A stretch of 64,000 nucleotides of DNA. It comes from Macrostomum lignano (taxonomy: Eukaryota). Below the pieces are notes generated by a model. It was not told the origin of the DNA. It saw nothing but the letters and a program-made list of their open reading frames with translations, and did not search any database. This document shows positions 30,501-33,500 of this stretch, piece by piece. Position 1 is the first letter of the stretch. Each line of letters begins with the position of its first letter. The stretch is taken from contig NIVC01003603.1 in assembly GCA_002269645.1 (NCBI GenBank), positions 24,552 to 88,551 on the forward strand, given 5' to 3'. The position numbers and the translations under genes are program-made.

Positions 30501-33500
30501 CCTTGCTGGGCAATCTAATTATACTGTTGGTTGGACAATTTTCGAATAGAGCGAGTGGTCCTGCTCAACCTGATCAGCTGCCAATGTCAATCAAATTGCC
30601 GTGGCAACCAAAATTGCCCCCCCGTGGTGTTTTTTACCTAATTAAATTTTGCACCCTGCTACCGCATCCGGTTAGCAAGAGTTTTTGTTATAATTCTGGG
30701 CGCAATCTCTAGCAGATTTTTGCTAATTATTCATTAATTGCGCTCACTGATTTCGTGGTCCAGACTCCAGATGCAAAATATGCAGTGCAAATCAACCGAC
30801 CCTAACTTCGAAGTTTAATCTCTGTTTAATAATCCACAATTAAAAATGGATTAACTTTGTAGCCCTCATTCCCAGAAGTTAACAAGTCTTAACCCTCATA
30901 AGCTGCTTCACAATCCTCAGGCTTCACAATCTTCAGGCTTTACAATCCTCAGGCTTCACAATCCTCAGGCTTCACAATCCCCAAGCTCACAATCCCTAAA
31001 CTCACAATCCCTAAACTCACAATCCTCAAGCTCACAATCCTCAGGCTTCACAATTCCCAAGATTCACAATCCCCAGGCTTCAAAATCCCCAGGCTCACAA
31101 TCCTCAGGCTTCACAATCCCCAAGCTCACAATCCCTAAGCTCACAATCCCCAAGCTCACAATCCCTAAGCTCACAATCCCTAAGCTCACAATCCCTAAGC
31201 TCACAATCCCCAAGTTCACAATCCTCAGGCTTCACAATCCCTAAGCTCACAATCCTCAGGCTTCACAATCCCCGAGTTTAAAAAATATGAATCCAACTAA
31301 TACAAAAATCCTAATATCCTAAGTATTAATAAACAAAAAGCTACTATTATTTTTAAAATAGAACTTTTTATATCAATATATCAGGTGACATAAGTTGCTA
31401 ATTTTGTACTCAAAACATGTTTTTAAACAAATTAATTCACCAAGTTATGAGTCTGCAACTCCGTACATGTGCGAGAAAATCGAGAGTCAGTGGCGGAAGA
31501 GAAGAATGAGCGGGGTGGCTGACGCGATAGACACGTGCCCCCCCCCCCCCCTACAGTGTGGGCAGTGGACTCAGCCCAGCATCTCAGTTCGCATTGAGAA
31601 GCGCCACCCCAACCTCCGCACACTCCGGGGCCCTGAGCCAATCCAAATAGCCACGCGAGCCAATGAGCACGCGACCCCAATCCTCTTCACTTGGGAGTTG
31701 GCTGTGAGGCGCGTGCTCATTGTGAGTTCTGTAGTGATAAAACTGGTGGGCAGGAGGCTGGCTTTTATTGTCCAGCCAGCCAGACAAGAGAGAGAAAGTC
31801 TTGAAAAAACACCCAAACAAAACTAGCAGAGTCAGCCAGTCTACTTAGATAGCAGCCTTAGTAGTGTTGGATTATTCAGAATGCTGTCGACGGAGCAGGC
31901 CCAGCAGCGTCGTAGGCCTTTCTCTCAGTTCTCCTCCTCCATGCGTTCTTGCCGACGTCGCCTGTCTCGTCGGCGCCTTCCGCCGTTTGCTTCACCGCCG
32001 CCGCCGACGCTGCCGTCAGCTCAGTCGCAGGCTGCAGCAACAACAACAACTAGGCAGTTGTACAGTCGCAAGCGCCGCTCCAGCATTGGCGCCGCTGCTG
32101 TTGCTACTGATGTACCGCGCAGCTTCAACTTCTGCTCAACTGCCAGCGTTATTAACGTTGTCGCCACGCCTACACCGCCGCCCCGATCGCCGGCGCATAA
32201 GCGTCGTCGCGGAGTTGAACCCGGCGGCGTTGGTGTCGACAATTTGAATAACGTCGCCTCTTGCAGCGGCAGCGGCTTGGGTCTACTTCGCGCCTGCGCG
32301 ACTCTTTGCGCCGTCCATTCCTAACTAGAAGCAGCCGGCCGCGCAAATACCGGCTGAACACTAGCGGCATAGCTACTAATAGTAATACTGCTAGCCAGCA
32401 CGCCAGTAGTAGTAAACCTATTGCAGTCAGTAGCGCCAGTCTGTGCCATCGGTCGGCCGCCGCCGCTTTCTGGCGTCTGCGAACCGCTTCGCCGTCGCCC
32501 TCGCCATCGGGTGGCTCACCGACCCCGGTGCGGCGCCCGCCTCAATCGCCGTTATTATTATTCGCCGCCTCTTCGTCCGCAGCCTGCCAGCGAATGGCCG
32601 CCTGCAGCACAGCCAGACGCTGCCAGACCCCAACAACAGCAGCGGCGGTTGCTGGCGGCTCTGGCCGACCATCGCCCAGTCATCATCACCAGCAGCAGCA
32701 GCAGCATCGGGCTCCGTTAGGCGCGTACAATCTACCGCCACCTGGCCAGGGACACGCGAGCGCCGGACGCGAGGTGAGACTATAAATAATTCTACGATGA
32801 AATTGATTTTTAATAAATAGAGAGCCATCTGGTCTTAGCTAGACTATTGTTAAAGTAAGCAAATAAGTCCTCTGTCTGCCTACCACGGGAGTGAAATTGT
32901 TCAAGCTTTGTACGAGTAGGAGTGAAGTGGGACGGTTTAGTTAGCAGACTTTTCCGAGTTTCGTTCGCAAACACTTCTTCTTAGCTAGCTTAACCCTTGC
33001 CCAAGTGAAGAATGATGAAGAATAAATTATTTCTATATCTGTGTTGAAGAGTGGGCGAGCTTGTCTTGTCTTTAAACCGGCATTGCGCAATCAAAAAATT
33101 GTTCAAATTGTTGTCCGTGTTCAACTTTGGATTGACATTGTCAAGTGGCTTTGCCCTCTTCTCGGCTCGGGGAGTGTAGAAGCTTGTGGATCAGGACATG
33201 GAAAACTGGTAGCAGTGGCGCCGAGCTGAAGCGCCTAAAATGAGGTAGCAGTGGCGCCGAACTGAAGCCTAAAATAGGGTAGCAGTGGCGCCGAACTGAA
33301 GCGCGCCTAAAATGGGATAGCAGTGGCGCCGAACTGAAGCGCGCCTAAAATGGGATAGCAGTGGCGCCGAACTGAAGCGCGCCTAAAATGGGATAGCAGT
33401 GGCGCCGAACTGAAGCGCGCCTAAAATGGGATAGCAGTGGCGCCGAACTGAAGCGCGCCTAAAATGGGATAGCAGTGGCGCCGAACTGAAGCGCGCCTAA

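Follow-up and report, generated by a model that had tools for sequence, protein, structure and literature searches.

GTPase-less isoforms of AGAP/centaurin-gamma proteins that begin with a first exon of their own have been annotated elsewhere, for example as isoforms X3-X11 of centaurin-gamma-1A-like in Argopecten irradians, and the PIKE-L, PIKE-S and PIKE-A set of AGAP2 likewise derives from alternative 5' ends. Hybrid first/internal exons act as a first exon when transcription begins at a start site inside the gene, and they are used internally when splicing enters at a 3' splice site lying within them. Here, we analyzed a 64-kb stretch of Macrostomum lignano DNA (the window, whose coordinates are used for all positions) that carries an AGAP/centaurin-gamma gene. 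In this gene, the block at 31881-32773 is probably an unannotated first exon that doubles as an internal exon and would encode a GTPase-less AGAP, with promoter, transcription and translation all predicted. We consider this explanation the most likely because two overlapping open reading frames (ORFs) seen in the window form one intact 302-codon ORF in a second genomic copy of the locus.

Two overlapping frames and a second genomic copy

We propose that the G+C-rich block at 31881-32773 is a single exon with two uses. The long mRNA keeps only its last 191 nucleotides (nt; 32583-32773) as exon 6, joined by splicing to the GTPase exons, which lie 14 kb further upstream, while the whole block would be the first coding exon of a second, unannotated mRNA. 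Transcription of this second mRNA would start in a conserved, CCAAT-bearing stretch at ~31.7 kb, and translation from the ATG at 31881 would produce ~235 novel residues before running across the exon-6 acceptor into the exon-6 frame. Splicing at 32774 onto exons 7-10 would then give a product of ~974 amino acids (aa) when assembled from the second copy, in which the linker, PH, ArfGAP and ankyrin regions are present and the GTPase domain is absent. In the window copy, a C missing by 32291 splits the ORF into two overlapping frames; either the assembly is wrong here, or a true frameshift has arisen in this one copy among the three or more that a hidden polyploid carries. In both cases the long isoform is unaffected, because the lesion falls in its intron 5. 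The features concerned are as follows (all on the + strand; a slash marks a splice junction):

12345-12510, 15697-15755, 15830-15917, 16499-16729, 18290-18424 (+): exons 1-5 of the long isoform, encoding the N-terminus and Ras-like GTPase; the predicted short isoform would be without these
31560-31880 (+): conserved upstream non-coding stretch, a putative internal promoter and 5' leader judging from conservation, a CCAAT cluster and an ATG-free run
31881-32582 (+): predicted 5' extension of the coding sequence in the alternative first exon, specific to the predicted GTPase-less isoform and lying at the end of intron 5 of the long one; frame mod 0 before the deletion, mod 2 after it
32229-32266 (+): proposed mini-intron GTTGGT...TTGCAG, rejected
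32291 (+): frame-break site, one C missing beside C32291 relative to the second copy
32583-32773 (+): exon 6, with phase-1 acceptor CCGCAG/ and phase-0 donor GAG/GTGAGA at 32774; also the 3' part of the predicted alternative first exon
45274-45414, 45509-45712, 45965-47254, 48011-48409 (+): exons 7-10, common to both isoforms, encoding the linker motif, split PH, ArfGAP and ankyrin repeats

A preliminary description of this DNA had placed here three CCAAT boxes, an ATG at 31881, two frames, an acceptor and a donor, and all of these coordinates proved correct when re-read from the sequence. The ATG at 31881 opens a 147-codon ORF whose stop lies at 32322-32324, and a second frame is open from 32252, across the acceptor CCGCAG/32583, to the donor GTGAGA at 32774. 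Two edits had been offered to fuse these frames, namely the addition of a G at 32279-32281 or the removal of 38 nt at 32229-32266 (GTTGGT...TTGCAG) as a mini-intron, and either edit does fuse them.

The assignment of 32583-32773 to exon 6 of the GTPase-containing isoform also held, both from the match of our 967-aa reconstruction to a 966-aa annotated product and from the exon 5/6 junction. Exon 5 ends in ...GTC TTT CAA GAG G/GTAAGC, i.e. VFQE plus one base, and the resulting junction, VFQE/ACQRM(AAC), resembles the conserved end of the GTPase domain in other species, VFQDACQKIV. The conservation of this junction confirms the exon-6 acceptor at 32583. The frame of exon 6 is also read by UniProt models P0001 and P0124.

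Using the neighbouring cyclin protein as a route, we reached two other copies of the locus, L001 (NIVC01000445.1) and L002 (NIVC01001106.1:140470-163403, GCA_002269645.1). L001 begins too far downstream to cover the block, and the comparison rests on L002, which includes the alternative-exon region because its intron 6 is ~10 kb shorter than that of the window (L002 3290-3376 region). Positions 1040-3150 of L002 aligned with window 31369-33456 at 97.4% identity. At column 929 of the pairwise alignment (A1), L002 has one extra C (L002:1968) beside window C32291, the window reading TTCG-CGCC and L002 reading TTCGCCGCC at the frame break; this is the single indel between the copies within 31560-32582. 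The ORF in L002 runs from ATG 1558 (window 31881) to the donor at 2464 as 906 nt, or 302 codons, in phase 0 and continuous across the exon-6 acceptor, ending in ...AGRE. Within exon 6, the copies differ by a CAG indel of 12 nt, which preserves the frame.

Because L002, with its extra C, reads a single 302-codon frame, the two overlapping frames are one ORF as judged from the copy comparison, which likewise indicates that the frame break is a 1-nt deletion in the window copy, either real or an assembly error. The earlier proposal that the two frames make up one coding unit was therefore correct, the same ATG leading to the same donor in the second copy, and so was the kind of repair first offered, one missing base; its identity and place were wrong, since the missing base is not a G at 32279-32281 but a C beside C32291. 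The ORF of the GTPase-less isoform joins the shared exons in frame in L002 (974 aa), and in the window as it stands it is interrupted by the 1-nt deletion at 32291. Confirmed coding sequence elsewhere in the window (3.8 kb) is free of frameshifts, which argues for a low indel error rate. It is possible, though we hold it doubtful, that the missing C is real and that the short isoform is made by other copies, such that one copy has lost only the GTPase-less isoform and retains the GTPase-containing one intact. If true, this would be a clean natural example of divergence between duplicated copies at the level of the isoform rather than the gene.

ORF length alone was unremarkable in this block of 63% G+C, with 147 open codons reached in 30% of dinucleotide-preserving shuffles and 174 in 15%. 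An exon-6 frame with 110 or more open codons upstream of the acceptor was seen in 4.1% of shuffles. In 0.3% of them, this frame together with one overlapping ATG-initiated ORF tiled 650 nt or more of the block, and in 0.07% the full 701 nt, and an ORF spanning the whole block, as in L002, occurred in 0.12% (P=0.0012; exon 6 fixed, 703 nt upstream shuffled). All 21 of the 21 stop trinucleotides in the L002 block are off-frame. Thus, the arrangement of the frames, unlike ORF length, was significantly beyond chance.

The G+C fraction rises from 0.44 to 0.64 at ATG 31881 and drops back at the donor. We scored coding potential with a 3-periodic second-order Markov model trained on the 3.8 kb of confirmed coding sequence of the window, which assigned 13 of 14 held-out blocks to their true frame. 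The two frames ranked first of six in their respective halves of the block (78.7 bits versus 27±14 in shuffles, and 34.2 versus 1.7±14). Coding potential was strongly negative over 31400-31880, turned positive from ~31850-31880 and became negative past ~32770. Since the best frame-switch point was flat across 32255-32295, the lesion could not be located by the model.

Divergence between copies and the putative promoter

Divergence between the window and L002 was compared across classes of sequence:

Confirmed exons: 13 substitutions in 3026 nt (0.43%)
Unique introns and intergenic DNA: 61 in 4500 nt (1.36%), 24 gap openings
Immediate flanks of the block: 14 in 629 nt (2.2%)
Putative promoter and leader, 31560-31880: 1 in 321 nt (0.31%), zero gaps
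Predicted new coding part, 31881-32582: 4 in 702 nt (0.57%), one 1-nt indel

Over the whole of 31560-32582 there were 5 substitutions in 1023 nt (0.49%) and 1 gap, a divergence that differed from that of the flanks (Fisher P=0.003) and did not differ from that of the confirmed exons (P=0.79). Just upstream, at 31274-31559, divergence was 4.15% with 3 gaps. These comparisons support exon-like rather than intron-like divergence for the stretch upstream of the acceptor. The four substitutions in the predicted new coding part comprise three non-synonymous changes (T>S, F>L and A>T) and one synonymous change, too few for testing selection on the protein. Copy-specific variants in the neighbourhood of the lesion lie at 31986, 32579 and 32660. 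A poly-C run at 31539-31552, with 14 C in the window and 16 in L002 (~1213-1228), sits at the upstream end of the highly conserved stretch.

The three CCAAT boxes lie at 31638, 31660 and 31677, where they had been described, and they form the sole cluster of three within 50 nt on either strand of the window. GATAAAA is found at ~31737 inside the conserved stretch. The 217 nt before ATG 31881 are free of ATG (31663 to 31881), and an in-frame stop lies upstream of this start codon at 31824-31826. We infer that the conserved CCAAT-bearing stretch is a promoter.

Between the CCAAT boxes and ATG 31881 lie a strong donor-like site, ATT/GTGAGT (31722), and a pyrimidine-rich acceptor, TTTTATTGTCCAG (31775), 54 nt apart and both kept in L002. 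The segment 31722-31775 may be a micro-intron in the 5' untranslated region (UTR) or may mark the end of a tiny non-coding first exon. Further downstream, the 481 nt at 32113-32593 are ATG-free in all frames (3.5 ATGs expected, P=0.013), the next ATG being that of the in-frame methionine (Met) at 32594 with which UniProt models of the protein begin.

Alternative explanations for the block

Several results weigh against a translated first exon. The margins of the two frames over the other frames in the Markov model were not significant alone (P=0.11 and 0.22). Neither relative synonymous codon usage nor position-specific G+C discriminated between frames, and the usage of CGT for Arg and ACC for Thr is atypical in the first frame. 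With three non-synonymous substitutions to one synonymous in the new part, selection at the amino-acid level is not apparent, and the low divergence could have arisen through gene conversion or a regulatory element. Searched exhaustively with HMMER, the second frame returned only P0001, aligned to the exon-6 part; a Pfam search of the extension, which is ~235 residues long, basic and rich in Ser, Arg, Pro and Ala, gave zero matches; and a hidden Markov model (HMM) of the AGAP linker motif scored ~0 bits on the block. In BLASTP against 234 AGAP N-termini, the first frame did not outscore shuffled queries (P=0.11), and the top matches of the second frame sat in unrelated GTPase regions. A homologue search with the joined 298-aa peptide also gave zero matches, a result that is uninformative, as low-complexity words swamped the list of 8000 candidates and even P0001 was missed. 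The similarity to STASI/RLRNSFRR-like motifs of insect centaurin-gamma isoforms that the preliminary description had suggested was not supported, there being no significant similarity either to the AGAP linker profile or to the 234 AGAP N-termini.

The public record bears on the question as well. The 235-residue N-terminus is missing from the deposited Mlig_3_7 annotation and from the UniProt models alike, and a 974-aa product would outrank the recorded 966-aa product in the annotation. The deposited M. lignano annotation holds approximately one transcript per gene (PMC10468722), so the absence of the short isoform from it would be expected in any case. Exact look-ups of the two window ORFs, P0001 and four reconstructed full-length products found nothing on record, and the supplementary tables of M. 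lignano transcriptome papers list AGAP1/AGAP2 in Gene Ontology lists only, without mention of isoforms.

The alternative that survives best is that the block upstream of 32583 is untranslated and is instead a conserved intronic element, such as an enhancer, an alternative promoter for an exon that is non-coding or purely 5' UTR, or a tract made uniform by gene conversion, with the ORF a by-product of G+C-rich low complexity. Any GTPase-less protein would then begin at ATG 32594 (MAACS...), like the UniProt models. We judge this unlikely. In its favour, ORFs of at least 147 codons are common in shuffles of the same composition, other frames and the reverse strand also hold long ORFs, and both the empty homologue and domain searches of the extension and the substitution ratio would fit an untranslated sequence. 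Moreover, the ATG-free run at 32113-32593 is leader-like, P0001 and P0124 begin at MAACS, and the donor-like GTGAGT at 31722 could bound a non-coding first exon.

Against this stand the 302-codon ORF itself, which starts with ATG, is in phase at the donor and is rarely matched in shuffles, and the step in G+C and coding potential, which coincides with that ATG. Furthermore, the copies differ within 1 kb by a sole indel, and it is this indel that leaves the ORF intact in one and broken in the other. The UniProt models beginning at MAACS are unreliable guides because the conserved linker is mis-spliced in them and one model is fused to the cyclin. Specifically, A0A1I8HQR3 and A0A1I8JKH2 start at the internal exon-6 Met (ATG 32594, MAACS) and skip, at 45712/46172, the conserved start of the linker and PH region at 45965-46171 (EQQQ...), and A0A1I8INI6 joins AGAP to the downstream cyclin.

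A second alternative is that the 38 nt at 32229-32266 are spliced out as a micro-intron, repairing the frame in the mRNA. Flatworm micro-introns shorter than 75 nt, with a peak near 37 nt and enrichment near 5' ends, are common and have been reported for M. lignano (PMC6530080), such that the size and near-5' position of the candidate would fit. Its acceptor, CGCCTCTTGCAG, is good, and the 38 nt have a G+C content of 47% compared to 63% around them. In keeping with the preliminary description, they amount to about half the length of the smallest confirmed intron in the window, 74 nt. However, L002 has the identical segment within its uninterrupted ORF, and removing it there would shift the frame (38 is not a multiple of 3). 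Although the splice sites of micro-introns are reportedly closer to consensus than those of other introns (PMC6530080), the donor GGC/GTTGGT matches the consensus MAG/GTRAGT at only 2 of 7 positions, compared to 4-6 of 7 in the nine confirmed donors of the gene, and no GT site within 31881-32510 scores at least 4/7. The existence of an ORF-restoring 38-nt pair is no evidence in itself, because 502 GT/GC..AG pairs would restore an ORF. The mini-intron repair was thus not borne out, and we consider it very improbable. For a recent polyploid, the methodological lesson is that comparing copies settles a frameshift-versus-mini-intron question that is undecidable from one copy.

Just as improbable is a third alternative, in which the second frame alone is coding and a spliced leader ending in AUG, trans-spliced to TTGCAG/32267, supplies the start. 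In M. lignano, the spliced leader has ATG at its end and uses the acceptor motif [T/C]TNCAG (PMC8629364), flatworm leader AUGs can initiate translation (PMC9851317), and TTGCAG/32267 both fits this motif and is in frame in the window. We rejected this candidate since the extra C of L002 lies downstream of the acceptor, which puts the AUG out of frame there with a stop after ~20 codons; it would also leave the coding-like first frame and its conservation unexplained. Finally, a programmed -1 ribosomal frameshift in the 32252-32321 overlap is effectively refuted: the change from mod 0 to mod 2 is formally -1 and both frames are open across the overlap, but all frames of 32240-32321 lack an X XXY YYZ slippery heptamer, and the intact frame of L002 needs no frameshift.

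Two further origins were considered for the block. A dispersed repeat or pseudogene fragment was rejected, as the block is unique in the window and no similar stretches were found elsewhere in L001 or L002. An RNA gene was unsupported, with zero matches in an Rfam search of the window.

Gene structure and comparison with related isoforms

We built the 10-exon model of the gene from tblastn searches with AGAP1/3 proteins and manual reading of splice sites; the product of the long, GTPase-containing isoform is 967 aa. The C-terminal part has the split PH domain, ArfGAP zinc finger (including the CADCG...CIECSGVHR motif) and ankyrin repeats of AGAP/centaurin-gamma proteins, and the N-terminal part has a Ras-like GTPase in exons 3-5 that is 59-67% identical to AGAP1/3 in tblastn and includes LLLVGTQD. 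The best protein match of the mechanical ORF at 46115-47464 (PH-ArfGAP) was the M. lignano 'Centaurin-gamma-1A' (UniProt A0A1I8HQR3), with 98% identity, and this ORF was ~45% identical to mollusc and vertebrate AGAP proteins. Exons 9-10 matched M. lignano Centaurin-gamma-1A with E=1.3e-233, the matches carrying precomputed PF00169, PF01412 and PF12796, and the linker-motif HMM matched exon 9 with E=4e-13. In each of two other genomic copies (GCA_002269645.1), the annotated product is 966 aa long and contains Ras (PF00071), PH, ArfGap and Ank domains; these 966 aa equal our 967-aa reconstruction plus 4 Q and minus 5 repeat residues.

Two donors of the long isoform, those of exon 3 (AAG/GTTAGC, 15918) and exon 4 (AAG/GTCAGT, 16730), are secured by protein homology (SPEG/GRFKKE and VGTQ/DTIS, respectively) despite a pyrimidine at +3. 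Intron 9 starts with a 20-nt minisatellite of ~31 copies (47255-47907) that is open in the exon-9 frame, and therefore the mechanical ORF 46115-47464 overshoots the true donor at 47255.

The window overall is rich in satellites and minisatellites. AGAP introns 5 (18425-32582, 14.2 kb) and 6 (32774-45273, 12.5 kb) consist mostly of mini- and microsatellite arrays, and both ends of the window are satellite, with a 28-nt unit in ~312 copies at 1-9135 and a 23-nt unit in ~448 copies at 53870-64000, both strongly strand-skewed. The cyclin gene adjoining AGAP (Cyclin_N, 50485-52208) is intact and has an intronic 34-nt minisatellite at 51156-51608. There are at least three distinct copies of the AGAP-cyclin locus (the window, L001 and L002), and their non-coding differences amount to 3-5%.

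If transcribed, the predicted first exon would add to a model flatworm an unannotated AGAP isoform in which the ArfGAP, PH and ankyrin parts are kept and the regulatory GTPase-like domain is replaced. The replacement head would be a basic sequence of 235 residues that is probably disordered and phosphorylatable. Transgenesis exists for M. lignano, and isoform-specific RNA interference and reporters are feasible, which could separate GTPase-dependent from GTPase-independent roles of AGAP in membrane traffic. A further outcome is the correction of public gene models, namely of their internal-Met starts and mis-spliced conserved linker.

Among the described systems, Argopecten isoforms X3-X11 share with the predicted M. 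lignano isoform the RK.RRRSNLF linker, split PH, ArfGAP and ankyrin repeats, the absence of the Ras-like domain and a private first exon located downstream of the GTPase exons. They differ in that the scallop first exon (MKDGKDGQ...) is separate and is spliced to shared cassette exons, whereas that of M. lignano would contain an internal exon of the long isoform, and the BLASTP comparison with the 234 AGAP N-termini detected no sequence similarity between the N-termini of the two. The truncated isoforms of vertebrate AGAP3 (580/626 aa, starting at MVLVGTQ inside the GTPase domain) are alike in having alternative 5' ends that give products with and without a functional GTPase module. These isoforms start at an internal Met and add nothing new, in contrast with the ~235 residues that the M. 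lignano isoform would add while keeping only the last turn of the GTPase domain (ACQRM...). As in hybrid first/internal exons, the acceptor at 32582/32583 falls within a longer exon, which would reach 5' to its own start codon and putative promoter, although for M. lignano the use as a first exon is deduced from the ORF and its conservation. The 38-nt segment, by comparison, resembles flatworm micro-introns in size and position and departs from them in its donor. Annotations of molluscs and vertebrates already contain AGAP isoforms that lack the GTPase domain or are truncated at the N-terminus, and the M. lignano case would add to this known type.

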